DNA from: Macrostomum hystrix
Taxonomy: Eukaryota > Animalia > Platyhelminthes
NCBI GenBank assembly: GCA_950097015.1
Contig: CATNEN010000002.1
Coordinates: forward strand, 4,278,001-4,342,000
DNA: 64,000 bases
Reading direction: 5' to 3'
Positions 3,001 through 42,886 of this stretch are shown piece by piece. Positions within the stretch are counted from its first letter, which is position 1, and every line of letters starts with the position of its first letter. The notes beneath the pieces were generated by a model that worked only from the letters and a program-made list of their open reading frames with translations, did not search any database and had not been told where the DNA came from. The translations under genes and the position numbers were made by a program.

Positions 3001-6000
3001 TAGAAGCTTGGGTCATATCTAGTTGAATTGTGATTCTTGTTCCTTTCAAGCTCAAATTAAGAATGTCTACAAGCGAGTTAACGCACAGAGGCTGGCGCGT
3101 TTGTTCTTTTCGTTGGCGACGGAGTAGAATGAGTTTTTGTTGGCGACTGAGTTTCGAAATTGCTCTCATCAGCTGCCCTTTGATCCGAGGCCGAGTCTGT
3201 TGTAAATGATAAGGAGCAAAGCTGTTGTTAAAGTTGAAGTGCAGACGAACTTTAAAAAATAAGTAATACGAACGCTTTCGCAGGAGGGCTGTGGGCAGTG
3301 GCACAGCACTCAGTAACACCAGACCCGGAGACAGTAAGGAGGCAATTCTGCCGATTTCTTTGACTCGTGAACACACTCGCACACAGATACCGTACACAGG
3401 CACAGGTGTGTACATCTACTTTCTAATAGTCAGGCAGTGTGCACTTTCACTATGACTTGGAGGTTGGCCCTCAATTGCGTAAATTGCGCGAAAAGCCCCC
3501 AAGCCTCCTGTCCGCGGCTGCGCCCCAAATGAATGTGTCCTAGCCGCGGAATCGAGCTAACGGACATTGGTGCGAGAGGCAGACCCGTTAGACCGATCTG
3601 CGACTCACCCCCCGACAAGTAGGTAGACAGTCAGGCAAATTACATACAATTAGTCACACAGGAAACATAGAGTTGAAGGTTTCAATCAGAACAATTCTCA
3701 CCTTTATCTTCAAATTTGCTCAGATTATCCTCCATATCAACATGCCGATCATTATCGGCTCCCTCCTGAAGCTTCGGCTTCTCGCTCATCGGCCCGTCCA
3801 GATTAACCGCTTCGTCAAGCCATTTGGCGGGTTGCGAATTTCGAGACGATCTTCGACTGCTAGCCGGACTGGCAGTGGTCATGTTCAGCAGCAGCTGGGT
3901 CAGCATCAGGGCGCTGTTGAAGGTGCAGACTGTCTGGCTGCCAACAAGCCGACAGTTCTGAACTGGCGGCAGCTGACTTGCTGGAGGTTGTTGCATCAGC
4001 ATGACTTGCCGATTCGATGGAAACTATTCTAGCTCTTCGATGATTCTAAATCTGAGCTCGCTGGTGCCAAGCGGGGTTTCTGTCCGATTTTATACTGACG
4101 TCGACGGGTGGTAAAACTGGTAACAGAAAGTTCTCGCTTCACATTGGAGGACACAGAGACAGAGAAATGAGGCTGGTCTATTAACTTTCTTTCTACCACC
4201 CACTCGCAGTCGATCTAGTGTATCTGGATTATAAATATAATGAAGGTATTTTTTGTAGAGCTAGCATCACTAAAAGTCTTGTTCGCAGCTTTGCTGTTGG
4301 CTGTTCTGATCCAGTCGATAAAAACTCACTCTTCACTCTTTCTCTTTCTGTGTGTTGCAGAAATTTCGAAACTTTGTTGTTTAGCTTCTCTCATTTCAAT
4401 TCTACGAGATTCTCAATTCTCGTATATTTTTCATCTCAGATTTTTTGCCACTCATAAAACATTGGTGACCTCATTTTAAGACATTAATTTTTAACCTACT
4501 TTTTTCAACTGTACTCTCCACTAACACTCTTTCTCTGCCACTGTTCTCACTTCTCCCATGTTCTCTATCTTCCACTCCTGCTCTCTCCCTTCCCTTTTTC
4601 TCTTATTAACTCTCTCTCTCTCACTTTTATGTCCCCCTTCACTCTTTCTCACTGTCCCTTCACTCTTTCTCACTGTCCCTTCACTCTTTCTCACTGTCCC
4701 TTCACTCTTTCTCACTGTCCCTTCACTCTTTCCACTGTCCCTTCACTCTTTCTCACTGTCCCTTCACTCTTTCTCACTGTCCCTTCACTCTTTCTCACTG
4801 TCCCTTCACTCTTTCTCACTGTCCCTTCACTCTTTCTCACTATACCTTCACTCTTTCTCACTATACCTTCACTCTTTCTCACTATACCTTCACTCTTTCT
4901 CACTGTCCCTTCACTCTTTCTCACTGTCCCTGCACTCTTTCTCACTATACCTTCACTCTTTCTCACTGTCCCTTCACTCTTTCTCACTGTCCCTTCACTC
5001 TTTCTCACTGTCCCTTCACTCTTTCTCACTGTCCCTTCACTCTTTCTCACTGTCCCTTCACTCTTTCTCACTGTCCCTTCACTCTTTCTCACTGTCCCTT
5101 CACTCTTTCTCAGTGTCACTTCACTCTTCCTTTCTCCCCTTCATTCTTTCTCTCCCACCTTAACTATTTTTCTCTTCCCTTCCGTCTTTCCCACCCGTTT
5201 CCCCATCACTGCACAGTTTATTGTTTGCTTCTGAATTACGTAGAAGAATTACGTAGACACAGGTCACCGAAGGACGTACATCAACATCAAGAACTGTCAG
5301 TTAGGATGCAGATGAACAGATTGGCTCTGCACTAAATAAGCGAATATCAAATCTAATTAGGTGAGATTTTATCTGTCAGGAAAAGTATTTTAAGCGGAAG
5401 ACATGAGATAGAGAGTGTTTTCGAGAAGAGCAACACAACACAGCTGTGTTAAGTTCAGATGAAACTCTATACACTCTACCAGCTAGTTTGATCCTGAGAC
5501 ACCATAATTGGAGAATGAATCAAATTTAACTAGAAAGCCGAAACCCAGTTTGCTAATGAAGTGACCAAAGCCATAAGATTCTAGGAAAGGGCACTGAGCT
5601 GAAGGCGTTGTAAACAGGTTTTGTTTCAGGTTCAAACTCGCTGTCTCTGAACAGGTTCTTCCTGTCCGAGCATCGGCTAAATCAACGGTGACCAAATCGC
5701 GTTGAAAACCGATCTAATGCAACTTGTTTTCTCACGTAAAAAATAATTACAAAGAAATTAATTAGTGCTAGAACCTTCGAATAAAACAATATTGACTTGA
5801 AGGTAAACGAAAAATTATTAAATTGTTAGAGGAGAAAATTTAACTTACTGTTGTTGAGAGTTGCAGAGCTGCAACTGTTGTTGGTCTTGCTGATGTTGCA
5901 GCTTCTGCAGTTGTTGCTGAGGTTTTGGTGGTAGTTCGAGTTGTTGTGGCAGTAGGGGCTGTTGTTGTGGTAGTTGGGGCTGTTGTTGTTGTGGTTGGGG

Positions 6001-10199: not shown

Positions 10200-10555
10200 G
10201 GGTGAGTGCCAGAGCGGTCTAACGCATTTGATTTTTCTCGCACCAAGGTTCCTGAGTTCGATTCCGCAACGAGGCCACATTCATTTGGGGCGCAGCCGCG
10301 GAGAGAAGTCTAGATGCTTACGGCCTTGAAGTCCGAGTACAACCTCAAAGGCACAGTGAGAGTGTACACTGCCTGACGATGAGAAAGTCAGGGCAGATGT
10401 ACACACCTGTGCGAGTGTGTGCCTGTGTACAGTATCTGTGTACGTGTGTGCTCAGGAGTCAGCGAAATGTGCAGAATTGCCTCCTCGCTGGCTGCGGGTC
10501 TAGTGTCACAACATGATGTGCCACTGCCCGCAGCCCTGCTGCAATTATTAATATT
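10200..10555 (+). mobile_element. tRNA-derived SINE copy, near full length
   Basis: Head GGTGAGTGCCAGAGCGGTCTAACG, B-box GAGTTCGATTCC, body, tail GCCACTGCCCGCAGCCCTGCTGCAATTATTA. Confidence 0.8.
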
Positions 10556-15411: not shown

Positions 15412-17233
15412 TCACCAGGGAGCGCAGGGGTCAGGGCACTCTCGCCGATAGGCAACTAAAGTGGCGTCGTCAACTCGCATCAGCGCCGTGTAGACCGTCA
15501 GCTTGTTTAGCACAGGAATCGAACTCAGGACGTTGAACAGGCCGGCAAAACTGGCAGCCCCAGTCTGACCCTTCTTAGTCATGCAGGCATTGGCTGGACC
15601 GCGCCGATTATCGATCGGATTTGGCGATTTCCAATGATCGTAATTGGTCTGCAACACATACCAGGTGTGGTTGCTGACTGAAGCCCGCTCCCAGATGTCC
15701 GCAGGGCCGACGCGATCCCTGGTGATGACGCAGCCTTCCAGGCGTTTAACGCCGCCAAGAATGAAGTACACTGGAGCAACGAGTTTCCAATTAGCCAGGC
15801 TGGACTTGGCCTCCGAGTAGCTGGTGGCATTCTCCAAAACTGAGCGGGTGGCGATGCCGAGCCAGAACTGATCCCGGATGCCAAGCAGCCATTCGAGGAC
15901 GCCGGCGAAACTCTGCGGCTTGGCGCCCACCCTACTGTTGACCGTCAGGCTGAACTGGCCAGGCCGGAGTCCGGTCAGCACGCCGATGTAGCCGGCGAAA
16001 TGGCTGGACATGAACAACTGTGGCAGACGTGGGTGGAGAAGAGGATATTAGCGGAGTTTTTTTTAATTTCTTAGTGCCCTTAAGAACCAACCACGAAGGC
16101 ACAGTGAGAGTGTACACTGCCTGATGACAGTACACAGTGTACGGGTATCTGAGTGTGTGGATGGGTGTGGCGGTCCCCCCAGTCCATGGACTGAACAGCC
16201 GTACGCAGCCTTCAGATGCGCCGCGCAATAGCTGCGGCTGTAGGCTCAATAGAGCTGGTGTAATCAACTATTATTATTATATTATGGAGGGCTGAGGGCT
16301 ATCAATGGCACATCACTTGGTGACACCAGACCCGCAGCCAGCGAGGAGGCAATTCTGCTCATTTCGCTGACTCCTGAGCACACACGCACACAGATACTGT
16401 ACGCAGGCATACGCTCACACAGGTGTGTACATCTGCACTGACTTTCTCATTGTGAGTAAGTGTACACTCTCACTGTGCCTTGGAGGTTGGCCCTCAAGGG
16501 CGTAAATTGCACAAAGATTCTCCAAGTCTTCCTCTGCGGCTGCACCCCAAATATGGAATCTCTGATAATCTGATAATTTTTCTCTTTTCTTTCTCACCAG
16601 TTTTCCATCCCTATAGAACTCCACATTAACCAGCAGTGGTCGCAAATAGTCGGCAATGATCCAAGAACTATTGGTGACATTCCAGCCTAGGAACAGGCCG
16701 AAGTCCATATTCCTGGCGTGGTACAGTCGGCCTGCCGAGTCCTCGGCTAGAATAGACGTGCACAATGGAAACAGTTCGTAGAATACGTTGAACAGAGTGA
16801 CCTCGCCAAGGCTGAGATTGGACAGCGCCGACACTCCGGCCAGCTCGCTGCGAAACGGCTCCGGTAGGGTTTGTGCCAACGGCACCATCTCCTTGTCGAC
16901 TAGGTTCATCAGTGCATCGGAGCCAGTGAGGTTGAACAGGAACTGCCGGAACTGGCCCAGTAGGGCGCGCATGCCGGCGGCGCGAGATTCAACAACCGGC
17001 CGCCAGCGAGTAGCCGGCGAATCGTCAAGATTGACGCGAGCCACCGGCACTAGGCTGTCCGGCGATGGCGGAAACGCGTCGGACACGCACTGGGCCAGTG
17101 GAGGTTGCGGCTGCTGCAGAAAATAAAAATCATAACTGTCGCTAGAAGGATATTGGGACGAAGTCGCGACTGGCCAATGCGCACTAGCGACCAGAACTAG
17201 CAGCAGAAAGGAGGATAGCAAGCACTGACGCAT
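15412..17233 (-). CDS. ASAH1: Acid ceramidase (Ntn-hydrolase)
   Basis: Exons 16598-17233 and 15412-16017, phase 0, about 413 aa. Signal peptide; FNVFYELFPLCTSILAED...HARNMDFGLFLGWN with the nucleophile Cys; FAGYIGVLTG, GCVITR, VLQTNYDHW, C-terminal CPDPCAPW. Confidence 0.95.
16270..16552 (-). mobile_element. SINE copy lacking the tRNA head, in ASAH1 intron
   Basis: Body and tail of the same family, ending in ATAATATAATAATAATAG. Confidence 0.75.
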
Positions 17234-17340: not shown

Positions 17341-17650
17341 AGGGGTTGAGTGGCTTGCGGTCTAACGCGTTTGCCTCTCACCAAGGCGCCTGAAGCTCGA
17401 TTCCGCGGCGAGGCCACATTCATTTGGGGCGCATCCGCGGAGAGAAGGCTTGGGGGCTTGTCGAGCAATTTACGCCCTTGAGGACAAACCTTCAAGGTAC
17501 AGTGAAAGTGTACACTGCCTGACGATGAGAAAGTACATTACCTATCGCATTACGGTATCTGTGCGCGTGTGTGCTCAGGAGTCAGCGAAATGGGCAGAAT
17601 TGCCTCCTGGCTGGCTGCGGGTCTGGTGTCACCAAATGATGTGCCATTTG
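17341..17650 (+). mobile_element. tRNA-derived SINE copy between U2SURP and ASAH1
   Basis: Head GGGGTTGAGTGGCTTGCGGTCTAACG, then GCTCGATTCC and the conserved body. Confidence 0.78.
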
Positions 17651-18413
17651 CCTACGGTCCTGCAGATAGGAAATTATTCCCATTAAGCAGCCACTCATTA
17701 TCCTTGTACCCTGTACCTAGGGGGCAATGATTCCACTTTGCCAAAAATCGAAAAAACTCAGAAAATGTTGAAAAGCTCATTGCGCTAGTCAAAGCACTCG
17801 AACAATAAATATTATATTTACAAAAAACCAAATTAATCCTGCGTAGAACAAATTCTATTACTGCAAGTAGCTAAGTGATCAATAAGGCAAAATAATATAG
17901 AACATTTTGTTTTCATTAACAAGACAGCACATTTATTATAACAAACAAACAAAGGAAAGCTAGACTTGTAGTTTTCAAGTTTCACTACTTATAGTACCCA
18001 AGATTGAAGATACACCGTTGAAACTATTCATTTTTATAAAGAAACACTAAAACTTTTTAGTTTGATGTTTTAGGAATTAAAGACAAATAATTATAACATT
18101 GCTAGACTAATGATAGCCAGACACTTGTCTTTTGATAAGAGGAAAGCAGAAAATATAACAGAGCAATAGGTAGAATCGGGATTTATTAGGGGGAAGTGGG
18201 AGAAAGATGGAGAAAGCGTGTGAAGGAGGCTAGAGGAAGAGTTGGGGAAGGGGCAGAGGAAGAGTGGGAGAAGGGGCAGAAGAGTGGGAGAAGGGGCAGA
18301 GGAAGAGTGGGAGAAGGGGTAGAGGAAGAGTTGAAGATAGTTAGAAGCAGTTCACATGTCAAGAATAACCGGCATTGCTGACAGACAAATCGATAAGTCA
18401 ATCAGTGAACGCA

Positions 18414-21400: not shown

Positions 21401-24400
21401 TCCGACTCGCGTTGAATCGCTAGCAGCTCCAACAATGGTCCCTCTCGAACAACGTGCTCAACCATGCGATTGATCGAGCTGAGCAGTACGCGATCAGCTG
21501 GCACTGTCACTTTTACAATGGCCTCCGATATGAGCTTCTCTTGCTCTGCCTCGCTTAGACTGCTCAAATCTATTGGGGTGCGCTCTGCGTGTTTTGAGAC
21601 AGGATTTTAGGATTTAGAAGGAATCGAAGCTAGTATTTAACAGGCTCGGAATCCAATAGAGATCACTAGAACCCTACCAGGAATCAAAGCTAGAAGCCTA
21701 CCTAGAATCGAAGCTAGAACCCTACCTGGAATCGAAGCTATAAGCCTAACGGAATCGAAGCTATAAACCTACCCGGAATCGAATCTAGAACCGAACCGGA
21801 ATCGAATCTAGAACCCAACCCGGAATCGAATCTAGAACCGAACCCGGAATCGAAGCTAGAACCCTACCTAGAATCGAAGCTAGAACCCTACCTAGAATCG
21901 AAGCTAGAACCCCTACCTAGAATCGAAGCTAGAACCCTACCTAGAATCGAAGCTAGAACCCTACCTAGAATCGAAGCTAGAACCCTACCTAGAATCGAAG
22001 CTTGAACCCTACTTGGAATCGAAGCTAGAACCCTACCTAGAATCGTAGCTTGAACCCTACTAGGAATCGAAGCTAGAACTCAACTTAAAATTGAAGCAAG
22101 AACCCAATACGATACTGGCCCATTCAGCAGGCAACTCACTAGCATTCCTCTGCTGAATAATATCGCCAGTCATCCAGTCTTTCGGCTGAGCATTGAATGG
22201 CAAGCCGGACACTGGCGGAGGATCAATCGAAGCCTGCAGCATCGGCGGCACGTAGATAGGATAGGTCGGTATCGGCACAGATTTGCCCCAACCAATCAGC
22301 ATCTGGTAGCCCATCAGATCGCGATCCCGCAGACGATCGACGGCCCGCTCGGAGTCTCGCCGACACATGTAGGCAACGAAGCCGCAGTTGCGCTTCTTGC
22401 TGCGCTCCATCTCAGTTCGGGGCCACATTATCTTCACGCTGGCTAGCGGCCCGAACCGGCCAAACAGGTCCATCAGATCGCGCTCAGTTATCTCCGGGTT
22501 CAGGTTGCCCAGAAACAGGTTAGTGGTGTCCTGGGGATAAACAATCCATAGGATAATTCACGATCGAAAATCAAGGTCACACATTTTCCTATGGGCTAAG
22601 AATCGAACTCTTGACCTCCTAGTAAGGAGATTGAGTCTCTAATGACACAATCTGAGTGAATTATGACCCAATATGACGGAAACATGACCCAATCAAACTA
22701 AACTATGACCGAATCAAACTAAACTATGACCGAATCAAACTAAACTATGACCGAATCAAACTAACTATGACCCAATCAAACTAAACTATGACCGAATCAA
22801 ACTAAACTATGACCCAATCAAACTAAACTATGACCCAATCAAACTAAACTATGACCCAATATGACGGAAACATGACCCAATCAAACTAAACTATGACACA
22901 ATCAAACTAAACTATGACCCAATATGACGGAAACATGACCCAATCAAACTAAACTATGACCCAATCAAACTAAACTATGACCCAATCTGACGGAACTAAA
23001 ATTCAAATTCAAAGAGTGAATTCTTCGCATTCGCAAGAAATTCAGCTATAAAAGTACACCGATTCCTTCAATTAGAAAATGTTTACCTTATCAGCTTCAA
23101 AATGAGAGGACCCGAAACCAATTTCGGAAGGGTCCAGGCTCAGCTCGGATCGAATGGGACTTGGCGGTCTCAATGGCGGCTGCTGCTGCTGCTGCGGATC
23201 AGGCTCAAATCGACTGCTAGACCGCCTCTCCGGCTGCTGCTCCTGCTGCATCATCTGCTTCCTCTGCTCCCGCTTTTCCTGCATGACTTTCAGCTCCTCC
23301 TTAAATAGCTCGAGGTTGGTCTTCCGTTTACCGGCGTCCTTGCGCTGCTGCCGAGAGGCCAGCGCGGCCGCCTTCTCAGACGCCGTCGAACTGGACGATG
23401 AAGAAGCGCCAATTGGAGGCAGATCTGAAGGCTGCGACGGTGGACTGTTTGATCTGCGAGTGGGCAGTGTTTTAAATGGTTACGCACTGACAACTAGTGC
23501 AATCCGAACATGCGTTGGTGAAAATTGAAATCCGAATTTTAGCGAAAATACTAGCACACTAAGCCCCCCTTTGGGGGGCACTACTGTTCAAACAAAAATA
23601 TTGTGTAATGCAGAAGGACAAAATAAACCTGAAAGCAAACAAAAATGAAAACTCATGTCGTCAGTATTAATTTCCCTGATTGCAAATATACACTCGTATG
23701 TGATTGCGATTCAACGAAAATTTGAATTCTCACTAAATACAAAAATAGTCTGTCTGAGACATTCAGTCTGTACACCAAGAGCCCCATCGGGGCAAAATTA
23801 CACAAGTAACTTACGTTTGATACAACTCAGCTTAATGCTACTTAAGTACATGTGAAAACTATCCCCTCAGCAGTAAAAAACCAGTGTCTCCCCAGCTGCA
23901 GAGAAGTAATTCCCCCCCCCCAGCAGCAAAGCGGTAATTCCCCCCAGCAGCAGAGCAGTAATTCCCACCCCAGCAGCAGAGCAGTAATTCCCCCCCCCAG
24001 CAGCAGAGCAGTAATTCCCCCCCCAGCAGCAGAGCAGTAATTCCCCCCCCAGCAGCAGAGCAGTAATTCCCCCCCCAGCAGCAGAGCAGTAATTCCCCCC
24101 CCCAGCAGCAAAGCAGTAATTCCCCCCAGCAGCAGAGCAGTAATTCCCCCCCCCCAGCAGCAGAGCAGTAATTCTCCCCCCCCAGCAGCAAAGCAGTAAT
24201 TCCCCCCAGCAGCAGAGCAGTAATTCCTCCCCAGCAGCAAAGCAGTAATTCCCCCCCCCAGCAGCAAAGCAGTAATTCTCCCCCAGCAGCAGAGCAGTAA
24301 TTCCCCCCCCCAGCAGCAAAGCAGTAATTCCCCCCAGCAGCAGAGCAGTAATTCCTCCCCAGCAGCAAAGCAGTAATTCCCCCCCCAGCAGCAAAGCAGT

Positions 24401-26361
24401 AATTCTCCCCCAGCAGCAGAGCAGTAATTCCCCCCCCCCAGCAGCAGAGCAGTAATTCCCCCCCCCAGCAGCAGAGCAGTAATTCCCCCCCCCAGCAGCA
24501 AAGCAGTAATTCCCCCCCAGCAGCAAAGCAGTAATTCCCCCCAGCAGCAGAGCAGTAATTCCTCCCCAGCAGCAGAGCAGTAATTCCCCCCCCCCAGCAG
24601 CAGAGCAGTAATTCCCCCCCAGCAGCAGAGCAGTAATCCCCCCAGCAGCAGAGCAGTAATTCCCCCCCCAGCAGCAGAGCAGTAATTCCCACCAGCAGCA
24701 AAGAATACTGGTAAACCCACTTAGAAAACTGTTAAACACTTTTAGAAAACTTGTAAACACATTTAGAAAACTGGTAAACACATTTAGAAAGCAGTTAATC
24801 CACACTTAGAAAACTTTTAGACACATTTAGAGAACTATAAAACACATTTAGAATACCGAAACCCAGTTTTAGAAAACTGTTAAACACGTTTAGAATACTG
24901 TAAAACAAATTTAGAATACTGGTAAACACATTTAGAAAACTGGTAAACACTTTTAGAATACTGGTAAACACATTTAGAAAACTGTTAATTAAAAACATTT
25001 AGAATACTGGTAAACACATTTAGAATACTGGTAAACACATTTAGAAAACTGTTAAAAACATTTAGAATACTGGTAAACACATTTAGAATACTGGTAAACA
25101 CATTTAGAAAACTGTTAAAAACATTTAGAATACTGGTAAACACATTTAGAATACTGGTAAACACATTTAGAATACTGGTAAACACATTAAATAAACTGTT
25201 AAAAACATTTAGAATACTGGTAAACACATTTAGAATACTGGTAAACACATTTAGAATACTGGTAAAAACATTTAAAATACTGGTAAACACATTTAGAATA
25301 CTGGTAAACACATTTAAAATACGGTTAAAAACATTTAGAATACTGGTAAAAACATTTAGAAAACTGGTAAACACTTTTAGAATACTGGTAAACACATTTA
25401 GAATACTGGTAAACACTTTTAGAATTCTGGTAAAAACATTTAGAATACTGGTAAACACTTTTAGAATACTGGTAAACACATTTAGAATACTGGTAAACAC
25501 ATTTAAAAAACTGTTAAAAACATTTAGAATACTGGTAAACACATTTAGAATACGGTTAAAAACATTTAGAATACTGGTAAAAACATTTAGAAAACTGGTA
25601 AACACTTTTAGAATACTGGTAAACACATTTAGAATACTGTTAAAAACATTTAGAATACTGGTAAAAACATTTAGAATACTGATAAACACTTTTAGAATAC
25701 TGGTAAAAACATTTAGAATACTGGTAAACACTTTTAGAATTCTGGTAAAAAAAAACATTTAGAATACTGGTAAACACTTTTAGAATACTGGTAAACACTT
25801 TTAGAATACTGGTAAACACTTTTAGAATACTGGTAAACACATTTAGAAAACTGGTAAACACTTTTAGAATACTGGTAAACACATTTAGAATACTGGTAAA
25901 AACATTTAGAATACTGGTAAACACTTTTAGAATACTGGTAAACACATTTAGAATACTGGTAAACACATTTAAAAAACTGTTAAAAACATTTAGAATACTG
26001 GTAAACACATTTAGAATACGGTTAAAAACATTTAGAATACTGGTAAAAACATTTAGAATACTGATAAACACTTTTAGAATACTGGTAAAAACATTTAGAA
26101 TACTGGTAAACACATTTAGAATAGGCCCTACAGGTAAACACATTTGGAATACGGGTAAACACATTTAGAATACTGGTAAACACATGTAGAAAACTGTAGG
26201 ACATTTAAAAAACTGTTGGACATTTAAAAAACTGTTGGACTCTTTTCTCGATTGAAATTTTGTTAAAGATTTGATGATTTATATGTTGTAGTAAGAAAGG
26301 AGTAGATGTCTCAATATATCGTTGAATTGAAGTCTGCTATGCACATTTTACCTATTCAAAT

Positions 26362-26406
<45 letters not shown>

Positions 26407-29400
26407 GTGAGAAAAGCTGTGATGTAATCTATTTATAAATTCGCACTGACTGTCTCGCCAGTGGGGTTGACATAGCTATGTACATTTGACACAGTGAAAT
26501 TCTTATCAGTGTACTCACTTTTAACGAAACTGGCCCTGATGCAATCATTAAAATTGGCAGCGAAATGCACGTTGACAAAACTGGCTCTGATGTAATGCAT
26601 TAAAAATGCTATCTAAAACAGTTTTTCGAATATTTAATCCCCTTGGCAATGGAATTAAGCTTAATAAAATTACGTGTATATGTGTCCCCATATTTGGCAT
26701 CTTTTGGTGAAGAAATGGTGAAAATCGGTTGAGCCGTTCGGGAGAAAATCAATTACAACCAAGTAACCAACCATTTCATTTTTAGTATATAAGACTAGCA
26801 AGTTTTGCCCCCCTTCGGGGAGCAGAAATACTTTTAATTCGTCTAGTATATACTTTTTAGCAGCTGTATTTACAGCTTTTTAAAGCTACAATGAACCCCC
26901 AGTTGACAATGATCCCCCCGTTGATGATGATCTCCTAGTTGATAATGATCCCCCAGTTGACAATGATCCCCCAGTTGACAATGATCCCCCAGTTGACAAT
27001 GATCCCCCAGTTGACAATGATCCCCCAGTTGACAATGATCCCACGGTTGACAATGATCCCCCAGTTGACAATGTTCCCCCAGTTGACAATGATCCCCCAG
27101 TTGATGATGATCACCCAGTTGACAATAATTCCCCAGTTTACAATGATCCCCCAGTTGATGATGATCCCCCAGTTGACAATGATCCCCCAGTTGACAATGA
27201 TCCCACAGTTGACAATGATCCCCAGTTGACAATGATCCCCCAGTTGATGATGATCCCCCAGTTGACAATGATTCCCCAGTTAGCAATGATCTCGCAGTCG
27301 ACAATGATTCCCCAGTTGACAATGATCCCCCAGTTGATGATGACTCCCCATTGATGATGACAACAAGTTGACAATGTTCCCCCAGTTGACAATGATCCCC
27401 AGTTGACAATGATCCCCCAGTTTACAATGATCCCACAGTTGACAATGATCCCCCAGTTGACAATGATCCCCCAGTTGATGATGACTCCCCATTGATGATG
27501 ACAACAAGTTGACAATGTTCCCCCAGTTGACAATGATCCCCAGTTGACAATGATCCCCCAGTTTACAATGATCCCACAGTTGACAATGATCCCCCAGTTG
27601 ACAATGATCCCACAGTTGACAATGATCCCCCAGCTGACAATGATAACCAGTTGACAATGATCCCACAGTCGACAATGATCCCCCAGTTGACAATGATACC
27701 CCAGTTGATGATGATCCCCCAGTTGACAATGATCCCCCAGTTGACAATGATCCCCCAGTTTACAATGATTCCCCAGTTGACAATGATCCCCCAATTGATG
27801 ATGATCACCCAGTTGACAATGATCCCCCAGTTGATGATGACTCCCCATTGATGAAGATCCCCAGTTGACAATGATCCCCAGTTGATGATGATCCCCCCAG
27901 TTGACAATGATCCCCCAGTTGACAATGATCGCCCAGTTGACAATGATACCCCAGTTGATGATGATCCCCCAGTTGACAATGATCCCCCAGTTGACAATGA
28001 TTCCCCAGTCGACAATGATTCCCCAGCTGACAATGATCCCCAGTTGATGATGATCCCCCAGTTGACAATGATCTTCCAGTTGACAATGATCGCCCAGTTG
28101 ACAATGATCCCCAGTCAATAAATGTTCCCCCAGTTGACAATGATCCCCCAGTAAATGATGATCACCCAGTTGATGATGATTACCCAGTTGACAATGATCC
28201 CCCAGTTGACAATGATCCACAAGTTGACAATGTTCCCCCGGTTGACAATGAACCCCCATTTGATGATGATCCCCCAGTTTACAATAATCCCACAGTTGAC
28301 AATGATCCCCCAGTTGACGATTATCCCGCAGTCTACCATGATCCCCTATTTTATGAAGACTCCCCAGTTGACAATGTTCCCCAGTTTAATTTTTTATTAG
28401 CTGCTATTGTAGAAAATTGAGAAGAACAACATTAGTTGAATATCAGACAAAATTATTTTCATACAAATGTATATCATTATGACGTTATATGAGAATTCAT
28501 CAATGGCAAAAAAAATTGCTATGATTCACACCCTGGTTTTCCTATGATTCAAACTCTGGTTTAGCAATGATTCAAACTCTGGTTTAGCAATGATTCAAAC
28601 TCTGTTTTAGCCACGATTGAAATTCCGGTTTAGCCATGATTCAAAATCTGGTTTAGCCATGATTCAATCTCTGATTTTGCCATGATTCAAACTCTGGGTA
28701 AGCCATGATTCAAACGCTGGTTTAGCCATGATTCAAACTCTGGTTGGCCATGATTCAGACTCTGGTTTAGCCATGATTCAAACTCTGGTTTAGCCATGAT
28801 TCAAACTCTGGTTTAGCCATGATTCAGACTCTGGTTTAGCCATGATTCAAACTCTGGTTTAGCAATGATTCAAACTCTGGTTTAGCCATGATTCAGACTC
28901 TGGTTTAACCATGATTCAAACTCTGGTTAGCCATGATTCAAACTCTGGTTTGCCATGATTCAAACTCTGGTTAGCCATGATTCAGACGCTGTTTTTGCCA
29001 TGATTCAAACTCTGGTTTAGCCATGATTCAAACTCTGGTTAGCCATGATTCAGACGCTGTTTTTGCCATGATTCAAACTCTGGTTTAGCCATGATTCAAA
29101 CTCTGGTTTAGCCATGATTCAAACGCTGGGTTAGCCATGATTCAAACTCTGATTTAGCCATGATTCAAACTCTGGTTTAGCCATGATTCAAACTCTGGTT
29201 AGCCATGATTCAAACTCTGGTTTAGCCATGATTCAAACTCTGGTTTAGCCATGATTCAGACTCCGGTTGACTATGATTCAAACTCTGGTTTAACCATGAT
29301 TCAAACTCTGGTTTAGCCATGATTCAGACTCTGGTGTAGCTATGATTCAAACTCTGGTTTAGCCATGATTCAGACTCTGGTTTAGCCATGATTCAGACTC

Positions 29401-32400
29401 TGGTTTAGCCATGATTCAGACTCTGGTTTAGCCATGATTCAAACTCTGGTTTAGCTATGATTCAAACTCTGGTTTTGCCATGATTCAGACGCTTGTTTAG
29501 CTATGATTCAAACTCTGGTTTAGCCATGATTCAGACTCTGGTGTAGCCATGATTCAGACTCTGGTTTAGCTATGAGCCATGATTCAGACTCTGGTGTAGC
29601 CATGATTCAGACTCTGGTTTAGCCATGATTCAGACTCTGGTTTAGCCATGATTCAGACTCTGGTTTAGCCATGATTCAGACTCTGGTTTAGCTATGATTC
29701 AGACTCTGGTTTAGCCATGATTCAGACTCTGGTTTAGCCATGATTCAGACTCTAGTTTAGCCATGCTGATGATGATGGTTTAGCCATGATTTAGTCTCTG
29801 GTTTAGCCATGATTCAAACTCTAGTTTAGCCATGCTGATGATGATGGTTTAGCCATGATTTAGTCTCTGGTTTAGCCATGATTCAAACTCTGGTTTAGCC
29901 ATGATCCAGACTCTGGTTTAGCCTTGATTCAGACTCTGGTTTAGCCATGATTCAGACTCTAGTTTAGCCATGCTGATGATGATGGTTTAGCCATGATTTA
30001 GTCTCTGGTTTAGCCATGATTCAAACTCTAGTTTAGCCATGCTGATGATGATGGTTTAGCCATGATTTAGTCTCTGGTTTAGCCATGATTCAAACTCTGG
30101 TTTAGCCATGATCCAGACTCTGGTTTAGCCTTGATTCAGACTCTGGTTTAGCCATGATTCAGACTCTGGTTTAGCCATGATTCAGACTCTGGTTTAGCCA
30201 TGATTCAGACTCTGGTTTAGCCACGATTCAGACTCTGGTTTAGCCATGATTCAGACTCTGGTTTAGCCATGATTCAGACTCTGGTTTAGCCATGATTCAG
30301 ACTATGGTTTAGCCATGATTCAGACGCTGGTTTAGCCATGATTCAGACGCTGGTTTAGCCATGATTCAGACTCTATTGTTGCAATGATTCAAACTCAGAT
30401 TTGCTATGATTTATGATATTTTATTTACGAAATGAAAAAAATAAATCAAAATAATCTTCAATCACTACTGGCTGAAAATTAGTCTAAATGATTTGACGCA
30501 GTGCAAAATCGAACCCTAGCCATGCCTAACTTATTCCTAGTGCCTACACATCGGCTATTCCGACTGTTGGTTAGTGGGTGCAGAAATCAGCCTTATAAAA
30601 TGAATTCTCAAAGTTCTGGCTTTGTACAATGAAGTAAGAAAATAGAGTACACTCAGTCTCGCGGTTGGTTGTGTACATTTATTTCCAATTTGTCTCCAGA
30701 GTGCAGGCTTCAAATTCAATCAGCTTGGGGTTGTTGCGCAATTTGACGATGCAATTTCAATTCAGTGGCAGTGAGTGAAATTCTCAATAGGCCAAGATGG
30801 TTTGACCTTTGAAAAAATCATGTTTTTCGAATATTTAATCCCCTTGGCAATGGAATTAAGCTTAATAAAAATACGTGTATAATTGTCCCCATATTTGGCA
30901 TCTTTTGGTGAAGAAATGGTGAAAATCGGTTGAGCCGTTCGGGAGAAAATCAATTACAAGCAAGCAAGCAAGATTTTCATTTTTAGTATATTAGACTAGC
31001 TGCCTTCGCTACCCTCTGGGTAGCCTCCCTGTGAGTTCTTATCAGTTCGTTATCAAAACTGGCTCTGATGCAATCATTAAAATTGGCACTGGAGCCTCAC
31101 TGTGCACAAGCTGAAAACAAGAATGCATTAGAAAAGCCTATTTAAAACTGTTTTTCGAATATTTAATCCCCTTGGCAATGGAATTAAGCTTAATAAAAAT
31201 ACGTGTACCGATTCCGGCCCATTTGTGATCTTTTGGCGAAGGAATTGCGAAAATCGGTTGAGCCGTTCGGGAGCTAGTCGATTGCAAGCAAGCAAGCAAG
31301 CAAGATTTTCATTTTTAGTATATTAGACTAGCTGCCTTCGCTACCCTCTGGGTAGCCTCACTGGAGTTCTTATCAGTGCGTTATCAAAACTGGCTCCGAT
31401 GCAATCATTAAAATTGGCACTGGAGCCTCACTGCGCACAAGCTGAAAACAAGAATGCATTAGAAAAGCCTATTTAAAACAGTTTTTCGAATATTTAATCC
31501 CCTTGGCAATGAAATTAAGCTTAATAAAAATACGTGTACCGATTCCGGCCCATTTGTGATCTTTTGGCGAAGGAATTGCGAAAATCGGTTGAGCCGTTCG
31601 GGAGCTAGTCGATTGCAAACAAGCAAGATTTTCATTTTTAGTATATTAGACTAGCTGCCTTCGCTACCCTCTGGGTAGCCTCCCTTGAGTTCTTATCAGT
31701 GCCTTATCAAAATTGGCTCTGATGCAATCATTAAAATTGGCACTGGAGCCTCACTGTGCACAAGCTGAAAACAAGAATGCATTAGAAAAGCCTATTTAAA
31801 ACTGTTTTTCGAATATTTAATCCCCTTGGCAATGAAATTAAGCTTAATAAAATTACGTGTACCGATTCCGGCCCAATTGTGATCTTTTGGCGAAGGAATT
31901 GTGAAAATCGGTTGAGCCGTTCGGGAGCTAGTCGATTGCAAACATACAAACATACAAACATACAAACAAGATTTTCATTTTTAGTATATTAGAAGAAGAA
32001 ACTGAGGTTTGTAAGAAATCCTGGAAAGGTAACTGACTCAAACTGACACCCAAAACAGAGAGCCAAGCTCAAACCTCATCTGTCGTGACGCCGGTTCAGT
32101 TGGGCCGTATTTTGCCTGCGGAATGTACACCCGCCTGGTGTCAGCCAGTTGAATCTCGCCGGCTCCCGGTTGAACCACACCCGCCTTGATCCACATCCGG
32201 CCCGCTGCGGCGCCGCCGCTCCTTCCGCCAGGCCGATTGTCGACTGAGAAGCTGTCCACCATCTGCTGGTAGATGAGCCGCTCCTCTGGCGCGGCGCCTG
32301 GCAAATCCGCTGCGAGGCTGCCGCCACCGCCGCTGCCGCTGTTGCCAGAGTCTGAAGCGCCGCGTTTCGCTAGACGCGATGGCGGACCTTCAGCCGGCGA

Positions 32401-32421
32401 AGCAAAATGTCGCTTGCGCAT
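18414..32421 (-). CDS. U2SURP: U2 snRNP-associated SURP motif-containing protein (SR140)
   Basis: Exons 32075-32421, 23087-23453, 22140-22530, 20973-21569, 20073-20296, 18414-18929; phases all match; about 813 aa. Motifs KTNLELFKEELK, RRM (TTNLFLGNLNP...GRFGPLASVKIMWPRT...RNCGFVAYM), SURP (VVREGPLLE...HVYYRWRLYSIL), CID (EAMVWCLEHAE...LFLASDLLHNS...WSEWALY). Confidence 0.93.
18985..19985. repeat. 28-bp minisatellite GAGATTCAAAATCTCACCTCTACTGTCT
   Basis: Fills U2SURP intron 5. Confidence 0.95.
20395..20933. repeat. 21-bp minisatellite GAGACCTGAAGAATCAGGAAT
   Basis: Fills U2SURP intron 4. Confidence 0.95.
21660..22080. repeat. 24-bp minisatellite GAATCGAAGCTAGAACCCTACCTA
   Basis: U2SURP intron 3. 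Confidence 0.92.
22665..23000. repeat. 21-bp minisatellite ATGACCCAATCAAACTAAACT
   Basis: U2SURP intron 2. Confidence 0.92.
23885..24700. repeat. Minisatellite CAGCAGAGCAGTAATT(C)5-9
   Basis: Tandem array with a variable C run. Confidence 0.95.
24705..26200. repeat. 21-bp minisatellite AAACACATTTAGAATACTGGT
   Basis: Tandem array. Confidence 0.95.
26365..26404. repeat. (AC)20 microsatellite
   Basis: Direct read. Confidence 0.97.
26890..28385. repeat. 18-bp minisatellite CCCCAGTTGACAATGATC
   Basis: Tandem array. Confidence 0.95.
28530..30410. repeat. 23-bp minisatellite TTAGCCATGATTCAAACTCTGGT
   Basis: Tandem array with higher-order blocks. Confidence 0.95.
30996..31993 (-). mobile_element. 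Three tandem non-autonomous Helitron-like units (30996-31327, 31328-31650, 31651-31993)
   Basis: Each minus-strand unit starts TCTAATATACTAAAAATG, has a tetranucleotide microsatellite and AACGGCTCAACCGATTTT, and ends with hairpin GCTACCC-AGA-GGGTAGC, 8 nt, CTAG. Junctions are CTAG|TC. Confidence 0.85.
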
Positions 32422-33916: not shown

Positions 33917-34891
33917 TTAAGCATGAAACTGTCGCTGGCTAATTGCATTGCGATACATGAACACAACAAAGATCAGGCACAGCAGTAGCACCACCAAATC
34001 GTCTAACAATCCTAGCAGGCCGAACACGGCCTCCGGTAGAATGTCCAATGGCGCTAGAAGGTAGGCAAAGCACATCACAATGACAATGCCGAACCTAGCC
34101 ATGTAGATAAATGAGAAGCCAGTTGGACTGAACAGATCAGCTATGAAGTGACGCAATAGAGTTGGAAAATCACGGATTAAATCAGTTAGCGACAGGCCGC
34201 GACCGGAATTGTAGCGATTGAATCGGTTCACTCTGCAATTTCATTTGTTTCTGCTTCAATTTAACAGTAGAACTACCAACGGAAGGATTTCCAACCCTCC
34301 CCTGACAGGTTTTTGCTGCACCCGGACAAAGCAATGCAAGCACAAGAAACTCAAGAACACGGGCCAACTTTTTATTGCGCACCTTCAGATACAAGAATCC
34401 AGTCGCCAGCTCTTCAGACCGTCGAGATATTCAACGGTTCTGGCCGAAGGTCAAACGGCAACTTTTTTTGGTATTCCTACTGTTAAACACGTTTCACTAA
34501 GAAGCTGACGAGGAACAGCTAATAGCATAGTTACTCCCGCCTTTTACCCATCCCAGACAGGTTTAGCATCGACTCACCTCGCCAACACCTGTTCAATTCG
34601 TTGATAAGCTTCTATATCGTTTTGATTATTATTATCATTAGGATTGGCTGTTGCGAGTTCATCTGTGGTAAACACTGGAAACAAGATAGTAACAGCCTGC
34701 CTGCACAATGGACAGGCTACAGAGTTCAATAGCCGATCATTCCACAGAGTGAGGAAGCACGGTCCGCAGAAGTGATGACCGCATGAGGTTTGCACAGCCA
34801 ATTGTGGTGATTCCTCTAGGCAGATTGGGCAGGGGTCCAGCTGTAGCTGGGGTGGGCGCGGTTGCAATTGGAAGCGCACACTAGTTGCCAT
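33917..34891 (-). CDS. RNF170: RING-finger E3 ligase RNF170
   Basis: Exons 34578-34891 and 33917-34232, phase 2, about 209 aa. C3HC4 RING CPIC...CGHHFCGPC...CPLC; DFPTLLRH; DUF1232-type YLLAPLDILPEAVFGLLGLLDD hydrophobic tail. Confidence 0.9.
34285..34455 (+). repeat. Dispersed repeat, copy 1 (RNF170 intron)
   Basis: GCTGCACCC...GCAAGCA.AAGAAACT...GTCGCCAGCTCTTCAGACCGTCGAGATATTCAA.GGTTCTGGCCGAAGGTCA is shared with 61380-61535. Confidence 0.75.
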
Positions 34892-35880
34892 GGCAATTGG
34901 GTGAAAGATAAAGGTTGCAAGTTTAAGTTTATCATTATTGGGTTAAATAACAATTGATCCATAACACAGCAACGTACTCCAATCAGAATCAATAAAGCCT
35001 GGTAAGGGTGCAATTGTTAAGAAGACAATAAGAAAGAAATGGAGACAAGAAGAATATTAGGATATTGGGCTATCAAGATATAGCTTGAGCAAATAAAAAT
35101 TATAAATTAGCCAAGCAATTCTAAGAAATAGCTCATTAAAGTATGATAATTATTATTCTTGTTGATAATAAACACAGAAGCTTTTGTTAAAATGGAGTTA
35201 GAATTATCTTAAGAATGGAATATAAAAACATTTGTATATATAATTGAGATCATTACTTGATGCAAACTTCCCCTAAGCTAGTGTTTCTTGACTTATTTAG
35301 TACCAATATCAACATTTTGCCACATTCCATAATTAAAATTGGCACATTTAATTAGGATTGTAACAAATACTTTCAGGAATACTTTCAAATACCTAGTTAG
35401 ACAGCCATTTTTAGGAAAGTTTACATAAAATATAAAAAAACTAGAAAATATTTGTTTCAAACAAAAAACTAGTTTGTGTATATAAGCATCTTTATAGTGC
35501 ATTTGCTGTGCTGACTATAGCTGATTGGCAATACACTACTGTGTATCTAGCAACAGCAAAAAGGAAATACGCACAGTAAGATCACAATGCACTTTAAGAC
35601 CTATAGACAATACATATATGATATTGATACCTATATACATATACATATATTGATATCAACTATAGGATTGTAACATCAAATGTGTTTAAGTGGCATGAAC
35701 AGAGAGCAGTGCTGGCAAAGTTTTACTATGTTTCCTATAATTATTTTTCTGCAATGTTCTACTTCTGTTTTTTATATCACTTTTTTTGTTTGCAAACGAC
35801 AGATAACAACAAAAAACAAGCTTAATGGTAATAAAAAGTCAGTACTTAGTTTAGTTCTGAAAAGTTCTGAAAAGTCTTGG

Positions 35881-36100
35881 TCAGTCTTTCTTCTTTCCAA
35901 CTGGGTAATAGTGCCTAATCCAGTAGAGGAGGGCACGAAAGCTATTCTTGGGGAATAGACGGTGCCATAAGAATTCTTTGAGGTGGCTTTCAAATAGAGC
36001 AGCACACGTGCCAAGCATTTGACACAGCTTGGCCTTCGCAAAATCTTCAGCTGCAGAATTGCTGTGCTTTAGGCCTAGCTTCCTGTCCCCCCATATTTGC
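35881..36100 (-). pseudogene. Merlin/ISXO2 (IS1595-like) transposase C-terminal relic
   Basis: Hand translation HSNSAAEDFAKAKLCQMLGTCAALFESHLKEFLWHRLFPKNSFRALLYWIRHYYPV resembles the recalled ISXO2-domain C-terminal pattern (YLxEFxWR...F..LL..I...YP). Confidence 0.55.
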
Positions 36101-38732
36101 CAGATTTTGCAATAGACTTAGATCTAAGTGTCAAATAATGGCAAAGCCATGTCAGCACAACTTTTTCAAACTCAGAATGCATGTGTGGCATGAAGTCAAA
36201 CGAATAAATAATATAACAAATGGAAGTAGAACATTGCCTATTTTTCCTTTTGAATTTCTATGTCCTTATCATAGAATATCATAAAACAATTAAATAGGCC
36301 TATACAAAGAGCAACAAACAGCAACAAGATGGCACTTCAATATTTTGTCCCAATTCATCCCTAGCGCCAGCACACAAAGCCGGGAAATGTCTATGGTACT
36401 TAATCCCCAAAAAAAATTTAGCACTTAAAACCTTGAAAAGCTACATCAGCATGTCTGTGACCCTTGCCATGTCATATTATCCATCACCATGGTCATGTAT
36501 TGTATTTGTAAGTTTTAATCAGTTAGAAAAATAATTATGTAAAACAAAGTAAAACATTGCCAAAAAACATTCCCAATCTCATCCTGTAGGAGCTATACCA
36601 AAAAGCACTGACAGGTACCAAAATGCCAGAGCTGGTACTAAAATGCAGAGAATCCAAGTGTTTACTAGGTAGGCTAGGGTGCATAAAAAATTATTTTACA
36701 CCAGCAAAATTGGCTAGGCCCCAACTGTAAGTATGAGTCGTATGATTGATTAAGTAAAATGAGAAAATTAGGCTTATTAAGTTACTAGCTAGACAAATGG
36801 AATTTAAATAAATCTGTTAATAATTTACTTTTTTCTTTATCCTTGACCTTAGCTAAGTTGGCATTGAAGCAAACATAAAAACTTGCAGATCAAATGATTA
36901 AGATCCTACTTACCCAGGGTTTCCATTTTCTCCAGTACCTGTAGACGTAGTTGTAGGCCTATGCATAGCCATAGATACTAACAACATAGCTAGACCACCC
37001 ATGACAACAATAATAAGAACAACCTCATAACCAAGACCATCAAAAAGCATTGTAGAAAAATCTGCATTAAGTGAGTTCATTTTGACAGGCCTTGATAATG
37101 TATTATTAATAATGGCAGTGTGTTTAGCTTAGCTAGTAGCTAGACCACCAGACCGAGGCGTAATCTAAATAGATTGATTGGGATAGTAGGCCTAAACGAG
37201 AAAGGGAACTAAATAAGGGCTGCAATTTAAGATTATGCAATAATAATAACCTATTTTCTTTCTTTAATGTTGTTTCTGTATCTGTCTAGCTAAGTATCAT
37301 GGCCACAATGACAACGATTAAATAGAACCAGCTTTTAAAGCTCTAAATAAGCTCTCGAACACACAAATTTATTAAAAATTGTACTGATTTTTTGCATTTG
37401 AAAAAAACGAAAAACTCTAACAGGTGAAACAAAACTTTTAATTAACATCAGCAGTGCTTACAAATGTTTTTAGGAGAGTTGTAAATTCTTCATGAGGAGA
37501 TCTACCGTATTAAACACATATTCATCAGCGAAAGAAAGGTACACTGAACATTTTGTTCCTTATGTAATCAATTATTTTTTTAACATTTTGTATCAATCCT
37601 TCCAAAAAATTTCGCCAACTTGTTGATGCTGTCGTCGACGTAATTCTCGAAAAGTCTTATCCTGCACGATGACTCACACCTGCAAGAGCTAAACTTTTAA
37701 AATCCCCTCCCTTTCAGAAATACAATTTTAGTGGTTTTTGCTTGTCCGATTATACCCATCCCCTGATCCTTTTTAAAATAATCCATTGCTTTCCTTATCT
37801 GTCAAGTTTCACTCACCTCCCTCCTGCCCCAATTGCGCATATAGTACTAATAAAAATAAATCCTATTTTTTCCTGGTACACCCACCTCCCTCCATGCATT
37901 CATTTGTTCTCCTATCCTCCATCCAACATAGTAATCACGCGCCCACCTCCCTCATATAGTCACCAATAACATTTCCTCTAGTCATGCACCCAGCCCACTT
38001 TCGTCCTAACCAATCACCGCGCGGCGATCCGAACCACATGATCCGGCTGTCTGGTAAATATGTTAAGGTCGGGTGAACCATCATGCGATCACGGAGTGTG
38101 CGCGTGATTCTCACGACTCAATATAAAGCAGGTGCACGGTGCGGCGCCCATTTGGGAGAAGACTTTTCCTGCCATGCGGACTCTTTCCGTTCCGGTTGGA
38201 CATTTCCAGTCATCTGTACGTAGACCTTAGCTTTTCGTCCAGTTCCCATCTTAGTCGGACTTTTCGTCCCCCTTCGGCATTCGTCATTTCAGCAGCTGAT
38301 CTAAGGTTCACGCCTTAAGTACATGATCGATCGGGTCGGTTTTGTGAATCCCGGCTCGCCGCACAACAACGGCGTCTCGCCCACACTAAGCTAGAGCTAT
38401 GGGCCTGCACGCATCGACCGGCCGTTCGACATCACCAGAGTAACGCTCCACACAGCGCAAAGAATTTAACTGACTGAATGGCTTACACAGGTAGTTTTAG
38501 CATTTTTATATATAGATTTTAACATTGAAATAACAAATTCTGATAAAGAAATGCTGACACATAAGATGTTATGTAGTACACTTTAGATCAAACATGCTCG
38601 CTCGTGCGCGATGCATTTATTTATCGGCGATTTCCAAAAACGAAAGCTCGTACAGTCCAGAATCGTTATTAAGAGCTTCGGATTTCTGACTGACAGTGGT
38701 CGGAGGTTCGAATCCTGAGATGAGATAATTGC

Positions 38733-39933: not shown

Positions 39934-41302
39934 ACTTCAAAATGCAGTCCGCTAAAGTTCAAAGTGTTTTGGAAACTATTCTTATAGTTTTTAAAGAGCT
40001 CAGGGAATCTCCAACAATGTCAGGAAGTATATAATGGCCATTGAAATAGCTGCTTAGCAAAACTATTGATTAAGTTTCAGACTAGAATCACAGCAATCGA
40101 AATAGTGATACAGATTTTCACATACATTAATTTCATGCATTTTTGGCTACATGCATTCAGTTTCGCTTTTGATTTAATTTCACTCTCATGTAAAGTTATA
40201 AAACAAGTACAAAAACTTGAATTTAGTTTAAATGAGAGTTGGTATAGTTAGAATTTTTAAATAGGGTTCATAACTCACATACGCATAGCTAGCTATTATA
40301 TCTAAAAAAGGTATAATTAAGACTGCAGAATTACTGAGAACAAAAAAAGTGTGCACACAAAAGACATAACCTTTTAATTACTATTTTTATGTAGTTAATA
40401 ATTGCCACATCAAATTGCTTACATTATCAAGCGTCTTTTTCTAAAACTAATAAGTAAACACCATATGAAAAAAACTTAGTGGTTCGTCAGTTCAGTAACT
40501 TTCGTGTGAGTCCTTGGTAGAACAAGTACTATACAACGAGAAAACTATCGTCGCTCGATGTATCTTAGAAAATTTCACATTTGAACTTGTGCTCTAAAAA
40601 TGTAGATACAGTTCTTTTTTTGTGAGAAATCTGTGTGCATATTAGTTTATGTTAGTAAAATATATAATTTATTATAAAATAATACGTGTTGTGTAGTAAC
40701 GTTTGTTTTAAACTTTTTTCCTGGAATACATTTTTTGAATACGGTATAAAATTTTTTTTTACAAAATGTGGCAAATTGTACATCGTATTTACAATAATAA
40801 AAAATTAACGCTTTGCTTTATCTCGCGGCTTGCGATTGTAAAAGCTTTTAGCGTAGATTAAAGTTCGAATTCAATTTTCAAGTAATTCGGGTCTTAAACA
40901 ATGTTTTAATATGTTAACTGACACCTGAAGGATAAAACCTGACAATCTGACATAGTTCAACTGCGCCTCAAACATAGTGATGGCATATGAAAATACCTAG
41001 GCTATGCCCCATAGTATATATATTTTTAATTTGTATTTTTAATGGTAGGCTTTGAAACTCAGTATTTGCATATAAAGAAATAAATGTGCATTTTATAAGT
41101 ATATAATTTATAAAGACATGGGCTGATGAGTGATGACCTTTCTCATATTTCAATGAAAAACCTTAGATTATACTCTACATAAATAGTATTCCTGTTATTT
41201 TTTATTCTGTGCCTTGCATAGTTTATCTATAAGCTGTAAATATAAAGGCAGATAAAAAATCACATATTTATTCTTTTATCAAGACAATGGCTAAGGCTAA
41301 GT

Positions 41303-41691
41303 GGTACCTGGACACTTTGTCATCCCACAACTTTGTCATCCAGATGACTATCTGTCCTTAGAGGGTGGATGATGAAGAGACTTAGACTTGTGGACACTTC
41401 ATCATCTATAAAACAAAAGTTTTCAAAGTTAGAACAGGACCACCCCTCCCACCCCTCCTCATGTCACATCGTGTTGGCACCTATCTTTCAACTCTTGTAA
41501 TGAAATCAGTTATGACACCTCTTTTTGACAATTTAGAGTGTGAAGTGTGTTCACACCTCTGCCCCACCACCCCACCCTCACTTTATTGACGACAAACTTG
41601 ATTGCTTGTTATTAGTAGATGATGAACTGACCAAACTTGATGATGACGAAGCATCCTACCTTCCAAGTGGATGACGAAGTGTCTAGGATCT
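41303..41691. mobile_element. MITE with 23-bp imperfect TIRs and 8-bp TSD
   Basis: Left TIR GGTACCTGGACACTTTGTCATCC; right TIR reverse complement AGATCCTAGACACTTCGTCATCC (5 mismatches). GGCTAAGT flanks both sides (41295-41302, 41692-41699). Internal repeats of the TIR motif. Confidence 0.75.
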
Positions 41692-42886
41692 GGCTAAGTA
41701 TATTGCAATTTATATAGGGGCCTACTGGTTTTTATAGTAACAATTTGTCTATGGTCAGTTTTCCTTTTCAAATAAATTTACAGAGCATAAATTTCTATAA
41801 AGTGGGCCTAACTAAATAGCCTTGTAGTTTCTAACATAGCCAAGTTAATGTAATGGAATAAAGGGCTCTGAGAATAAAAAAAAATCTGAAATTCCCTGAC
41901 TTTTCATTCATGCAATTAGATGTATTTAAGTATAGGTGGATAATATAATGGCTGGAATGCTTCATAGGCACTACACAAGAAACTATTTCTACTATATTAC
42001 TATGCTATATCTTAGGTACATAGAATACAACATTTGAGTTATATACTCTAAAAAGTTGAGAAAGACTAGAAAATGGATGCAAATTACAAAGTTGCACAGT
42101 CTTTCATAGTTTAGCTAAAAAATTAAATTGTGTGTGGATTACACTTTTACCCAACTATATTGGACTTAAGTGCATTGAGGCTAGTTCTTTGTGGGTGTAA
42201 AAAGGCCAGCAGACTCTCCATTCAGGGGTTGTTTATGCCATTTTCCAAAGTTCATCTGTTAAAATGGCACTTCTGGAGGACTGGTTGGTTTTTGACTGGT
42301 TGGACAAGCTAAGGGCTGTGCTCCTGTAGCTTCATCTGCCAGGAATCAGGGCACAGATCATACTCAGGCCCCTGTGTCAGTGGCACCAAGTGGCCCCTGC
42401 ATTTCCAATCCTTGTCATTTGTCATGCCTGCCATAATCCCTTGTTGCCCGCCAGAATATTATCAATTAGCATAGACCAGTTGATGACATGTGAGCTGTCC
42501 ATTGAGGGGCATTGGAATATGGGACTACAAGAGAGGTACTCACCCAAAATATTCTTCAGCTTTCCTCTGGTTCTATGGTCAGTGAATTTTTGAAGCAAAA
42601 GCAGAATTGCTTGTCTAGGGTTAGGAATGAGGCTGTTTAGTTGACAACTATCTTACTATCAAGTATTGGAGTTCTTCCTAGAACATATTGAATACATCAG
42701 GGAAGTCGGGGAACGTAAAACAGGTCAAAGTTCGGCTCCTATTTTTTTACCATTCAAATCTGATCAGAAGTCGTCTTACATAACCTCGATGATATAAATT
42801 TGCAGCATAAACTGACAAAAATTATAAGGTTTCGATCGAAGTCTACTTAACCAGAAAAGGGTATTCAAGCTATTTAATTTAAGATC

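Follow-up and report, generated by a model that had tools for sequence, protein, structure and literature searches.

Helitron circles with exact joins have been demonstrated experimentally (PMC4778049, PMC5876387), and bat elements are known to gain new 3' ends and to form compound elements (PMC4224331, PMC4778049). For a dissimilar Helitron pair in maize, consecutive insertion has been debated, with the same two models that arise below (PMC2267711). Examples of tandem Helitron arrays and of elements with minisatellites come from frogs, oyster, Hydractinia, and plants (PMC7492417 and PMC12001565 among the sources). New ends have also been described in Lepidoptera (PMC4038834). The literature already has examples of mixed trains, of new 3' ends, and of Helitrons that carry satellites.

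The locus described here, a train of five Helitron-like units in the first intron of a flatworm gene, is a real and tidy case of an arrangement known from earlier work on maize and bats. A literature search turned up nothing published on Helitron trains in Macrostomum. What is new is the recognition of its three short units as pre-diverged variants, along with the mosaic head of a fourth unit; these suggest that the train grew in steps, with recombination within a head common to the units.

A five-unit train in U2SURP intron 1

The window is a stretch of 64,000 nucleotides of Macrostomum hystrix DNA. The gene that hosts the train lies on the minus strand and is U2SURP: searched one exon at a time, it gave RRM_1 and Surp matches in later exons, and its first exon matches a Macrostomum lignano protein (71% identity, 84 amino acids). 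The same M. lignano protein also contains RNF170-like sequence, and an RNF170-like sequence is the upstream neighbour in this window. The limits of intron 1 (Table 1) are set by a spliced contig from public run X8, because this contig joins the first exon exactly to the predicted start of exon 2; it is silent on the train in that animal.

The train consists of units U1 to U5, arranged head to tail on the minus strand, and fills 8,443 of the 8,621 bp of the intron. Subtraction of the train leaves 178 bp, made up of 81 and 97 bp of host sequence. The train has thereby enlarged a small intron of about 178 bp to 8.6 kb, and the splice sites remain intact. An empty, train-free allele was not found in contigs of the four public runs compared with 31500-32420.

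All four inner junctions read CTAG|TC, with zero bases gained or lost, and the whole train occupies a single T|T site whose outer flanks have no repeat in common. The assembly gives T as the outer 5' flank, and so does contig X1-8, which carries this flank plus 22 nucleotides of U1 with zero differences. The five-unit structure is real. Much of this had been proposed by a sequence-only reading of the window, and its main observations are borne out: five minus-strand units of these lengths with exact joins; a 7-bp stem, 3-nucleotide loop, 8-nucleotide spacer, and CTAG at the end of each; two different minisatellites in each long unit; and T as the outermost 5' flank.

Table 1. Features of the U2SURP intron 1 train, in the order of the minus strand.
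Feature	Position	Strand	Basis
U2SURP first coding exon	32075..32421	-	ORF; M. lignano protein match; RRM_1, Surp in later exons
U2SURP intron 1, GT..AG, 8,621 bp	23454..32074	-	Run X8 spliced contig, 32075 joined to 23453
Target-site 5' host base, T	31994	-	Sequence of outer flank
U1, short non-autonomous Helitron (by end features), 343 bp; terminator 31679-31651	31651..31993	-	Ends, junctions; flank contig X1-8
U2, short Helitron (by end features), 323 bp; head 31650-31481; terminator 31356-31328	31328..31650	-	Ends, junctions, head alignment
U3, short Helitron (by end features), 332 bp; head 31327-31150; terminator 31024-30996	30996..31327	-	Ends, junctions, head alignment
U4, long non-autonomous Helitron (by end features), 4,201 bp; own body past nt 174; terminator 26823-26795	26795..30995	-	Ends, junctions; head-body join also in X5, X8 contigs
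U4 mosaic head: nt 1-39 U3-like, nt 40-174 U5-like; switch near 30957, at microsatellite end	30822..30995	-	Identity runs
23-bp minisatellite in U4, 82 copies	28521..30411		Tandem-repeat analysis of sequence
18-bp minisatellite in U4, 84 copies	26888..28386		Tandem-repeat analysis of sequence
U5, long non-autonomous Helitron (by end features), 3,244 bp; head 26794-26621; terminator 23579-23551	23551..26794	-	Ends, junctions
21-bp minisatellite in U5, 70 copies	24702..26196		Tandem-repeat analysis of sequence
25-bp minisatellite in U5, 31 copies	23890..24690		Tandem-repeat analysis of sequence
Target-site 3' host base, T; no target duplication	23550	-	Sequence of outer flank

Every unit starts with TCT(A/T)ATATAC (not TC(T/A)ATATAC, as first read) and carries an 18-nucleotide core motif. 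The window contains this 3' end geometry at five places, whereas 200 local shuffles give 0.16 on average (maximum 2), and the terminator hairpin of each unit folds as predicted. Three versions of this hairpin are present, and these had been taken for unrelated sequences. Their stems are in fact identical at 13 of 14 positions (U4 and U5), 11 of 14, or 10 of 14, with pairing retained; the loops, AGA, GAA, and AAA, all follow the pattern purine-purine-A; and the 8-nucleotide spacers are largely dissimilar (3/8), each ending in G. Judged from these alignments, the three terminators are homologous hairpins. Terminators with variable stems and conserved loops are expected, because in the bat element Helraiser a stem swap costs little activity and loop changes matter (PMC4778049). 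The long units U4 and U5 contain no bypassed internal terminator of the hairpin-CTRR type, and the non-satellite parts of the units contain no coding frame longer than 68 amino acids; nor was an autonomous partner seen at this locus.

By their end features, and by HELIANO criteria, the units would be classed as non-autonomous Helitrons of the canonical type (HLE1). Both the 5' TC and the hairpin with CTAG are found in 5/5 units, target duplication is absent, and the X1 contigs reveal a dispersed multi-copy family with sharp ends. The target here, a single site, is T|T, as opposed to the usual A|T of HLE1; T|T is the target of HLE2. The A|T target of HLE1 is a preference and not strict (PMC11417382), and TT is a leading minor target of Helraiser (PMC4778049). 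Terminal or subterminal inverted repeats of the HLE2 type, 11-18 nucleotides long, are absent: the best matches span 7-10 nucleotides and stand at shuffle level in four units, and U5 has a single 10-mer inverted match composed of A and T only. Pattern scans of metagenome and viral contigs gave no match.

Shared heads, several bodies, and minisatellites

All five units have a head in common: 170-190 bp, comprising a short microsatellite and the core motif. The Lep1 elements of Lepidoptera have a head of similar microsatellite-plus-core arrangement. The U1 head (31993-31804) has an 8-nucleotide microsatellite, unlike those of U2 to U4. Beyond the head the units part ways. U1 to U3 end no more than about 150 bp further on; U5 has the same body in diverged form (88/132 identical) until about nucleotide 295 and then continues for 2.9 kb more; and U4 changes at nucleotide 175 to an unrelated body.

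The U4 head is itself composite. Its first 39 nucleotides are identical to U3 (39/39), after which it matches U5 at 132/135 positions versus 118/138 for U3. The informative sites, 6 and then 19, fall into two clean runs (P about 1e-5). This mosaic may be an older subfamily trait rather than a local event.

Contigs from four public runs (X1, X5, X6, and X8; X1 is possibly the source sample) were compared with 31500-32420, and in X1 757 contigs match within this segment. Depth in X1 is 85 for the exon and single-copy flank and 8,452 for one element contig, falling at the unit 5' end; because of this disparity the family is put at no fewer than hundreds of copies, summed contig depths being rough figures and not copy numbers. 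The outer 5' junction and inner junctions are covered by public contigs, including a junction of the U1-U2 type crossed by X8 and X6 contigs; these are short-read contigs, and none spans the whole train.

The same parts recur in other combinations. At 31803/31804 contigs pass out of the head, in X5 and X8 into the U4 body and in X1 into a third body, and seven other X1 contigs have a U4-like terminator immediately before the head. In X8 a unit 3' end gives way to T and host sequence, and contigs from other loci show CTAG|T, plus one A|TC. The one 175-bp head is therefore followed by three or more bodies and by several hairpin-CTAG ends that are homologous, and, because contigs join it elsewhere to the U4 body, the third body, and U4-like terminators, the modular build is a family trait. 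The proposal of a head-to-tail, Helitron-like family that swaps its ends therefore stands as regards one head with several bodies and 3' ends, at other loci too; its picture of unrelated terminators swapped in does not. X5 and X6 are labelled as other organisms; their element pieces, at depth 2-18 with no exon, fit trace worm DNA and are not taken as evidence of horizontal transfer or of a second species.

Outside the microsatellite, U1, U2, and U3 differ at 13 columns. At nine of these the other allele is present in X1 at depths of 5,600-118,000 (flank 85), so these variants are common to many other copies; three columns vary in U2 only and are not among the nine. For the most part, then, the short units are pre-diverged variants that already existed in the genome. 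This speaks against their origin in a single rolling-circle event or by simple tripling of one unit in place, although gene conversion could leave a similar pattern.

The four minisatellite arrays make up 76% of the long units U4 and U5. Outside the train the window holds 25 further arrays, with periods of 16-34 bp, occupying 30% of its length, and it had been suggested that the minisatellites filling this genome's introns may be carried by the train's family. None of the 25 contains the head (0/25, five mismatches allowed), and none has a repeat unit in common with the train's four arrays (at most two shared 11-mers each). The other arrays are not explained by this family.

Growth of the train

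The favoured account, given about an even chance, is a founding insertion followed by stepwise growth through recombination of pre-diverged units in the shared head. A Rep/helicase acting in trans would have made the founding insertion in the T|T site, to judge from the ends. The train would then have grown step by step from units already diverged elsewhere, by recombination in the head, the partner being either an excised circle, in which CTAG|TC is joined exactly, or another copy. With the head present in all five units, such an exchange could take place at any of the junctions. This route is favoured on three counts: junctions would stay exact, a single T|T event is enough, and mosaic heads of the U4 kind are predicted. 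Helraiser circles have precise CTAG-TC joins, and a swapped stem is tolerated (PMC4778049). The several bodies and 3' ends may have arisen by the known routes of terminator read-through and new-end capture, and by exchange at the head boundary; the minisatellites would have expanded inside the long bodies and travelled passively with them. The odd microsatellite of U1 is of the kind that a reciprocal product might show, but reciprocity is only suggestive, because U1 does not start like U5. No intermediate train allele was seen in contigs of the four runs compared with 31500-32420.

A possible, if doubtful, alternative is cassette-like growth in which the transposase adds incoming units at resident ends, with nicks placed either at CTAG|T or ahead of the 5' TC. 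Such addition is consistent with the G|T junctions, which are exact to the base and link pre-diverged variants, and with an X6 contig in which a different CTAG-ending sequence lies upstream of the head. For the dissimilar maize pair, successive insertions at a GT site have been put forward (PMC2267711), and abutting insertions occur in bats (PMC4778049). However, all five units share the head, so recombination suffices; the U4 mosaic is left unexplained; and Helraiser insertions in cells did not cluster around donor sites (PMC4778049). The stronger proposal, that the ends of resident copies (CTAG|TC, the same sequence as the circle join) are the transposase's preferred target and that mixed trains inflate small introns about fifty-fold, is advanced tentatively. 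If true, it would settle the question of insertion versus concatemer that has been open since the maize and bat reports.

It is rather unlikely that a ready-made train moved in as a block, in one event that started at the U1 5' end, bypassed four terminators, and stopped at the end of U5. A single non-canonical T|T event would then be enough, and there are documented cases of bypassed terminators and of compound elements (PMC4778049, PMC4224331). However, all four of the hairpin-CTAG ends to be bypassed are intact, no second block was seen in the window and the contigs examined, and the origin of the train is shifted to another locus. The growth routes considered so far (recombination, end addition, and block movement) can combine.

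In one of the two maize models (PMC2267711), canonical insertion takes place repeatedly between a host A and the 5' TC of the resident copy, which would yield exact CTAG|TC joins. This model is very improbable here: the outer base is T, which would require five non-canonical events or later mutation of an A. The suggestion that the family targets its own 5' end in this canonical A|TC form is likewise not supported, the outer flank being T and the inner junctions G|T. Plain rolling-circle concatenation, also proposed from the sequence, is not supported: the units are different variants, with three body types, and the short units differ at sites that are polymorphic among genomic copies.

Finally, an assembly artefact, or satellite, SINE, or retrozyme repeats that resemble Helitrons, is hardly credible: no single contig spans the train, which short-read contigs cannot do, but many of the sites at which the units differ vary genuinely among genomic copies, the outer 5' junction and inner junctions lie within contigs, the end geometry is above chance, and no Rfam family, hammerhead included, was matched (one sub-threshold match fell on an (AC)n run alone).

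Comparison with known systems

By itself this is a clean but otherwise ordinary Helitron train, and it counts as one data point. Pre-diverged units and mosaic heads, counted genome-wide, could separate recombination from end-targeted insertion.

The dissimilar maize pair (Du et al. 2008, PMC2267711) is alike in that TC follows directly on CTAG, at a G/T junction between elements that differ. It differs in joining two gene-carrying elements, whereas here there are five non-coding units with a shared head, one of them mosaic. The bat Helibat and Helraiser elements (PMC4778049, PMC5876387, PMC4224331) share the 5' TC, the hairpin near CTAG, and the precise circle join, as well as abutting insertions, new ends by bypass, and TT as a minor target; the Helraiser hairpin differs in lying 11 nucleotides from the end. 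Lep1 (PMC4038834), compared by description, likewise combines a short conserved 5' part with variable, acquired 3' sequence ending in CTRR, but Lep1 copies are said to stand alone, inserted at A|T. Satellite-carrying Helentrons (oyster Cg_HINE, PMC7492417; Heli2Xen, PMC12001565) resemble the long units in their left microsatellite and one or two central tandem arrays. They differ in that they have subterminal inverted repeats and that their monomers are longer (in oyster, 100-500 bp), whereas the units of the train are without such repeats, have TC and CTAG ends, and carry monomers of 18-25 bp.

Element pieces and the body of the train

Contigs of two public sequencing runs labelled as other organisms (X5 and X6) were compared with window 31500-32420. 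Both contain low-depth pieces of the Helitron-like element that match window 31531-31970 and are up to 98% alike, although the first coding exon of U2SURP (32075-32421, minus strand) is absent from the contigs of either run. The simplest reading is that these pieces are trace worm DNA.

Within the 3,244-bp unit of the train (U5, minus strand), a short motif of about 17 bp is locally duplicated in window 26500-26600, its copies about 50 bp apart. The duplicated motif sits in the body portion common to this unit and the three short ones (U1-U3).

Repeats and composition outside the train

Outside the train, 25 minisatellite arrays with periods of 16-34 bp account for about 30% of the window; across window 1-64000, none of the 25 is related to the four arrays inside the two long units. 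Two long A+T-rich stretches (35000-37900 and 40000-42800) lack minisatellites, in contrast to the remaining window, and an island richer in G+C, with a TATA-like motif, lies at 37900-38500.

Six near-full copies of a repeat about 330 bp long are dispersed through the window in both orientations (74-88% identity). One end of the repeat carries A-box and B-box-like motifs and the tail is A/T-rich: by appearance, it looks like a tRNA-derived SINE.

Features of the window outside the train
Feature	Position	Strand	Details
RNF170-like gene	33917-34891	-	RING and DUF1232 domains
200-bp repeat, two copies	34258-34453; 61349-61534		74% identity
~330-bp repeat, near-full copies	241-556; 3280-3610; 10200-10554; 16286-16552; 17357-17661; 52745-53065
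~330-bp repeat, partial copies	16076-16127; 50014-50147

The neighbouring RNF170-like gene

An RNF170-like gene lies 1.5 kb upstream of U2SURP; its intron contains one of the two copies of the 200-bp repeat. A database entry from M. lignano fuses the end of an RNF170-like sequence to U2SURP exon 1, which suggests that the entry is a mis-joined model and that the order of these genes in M. lignano matches that in the window.
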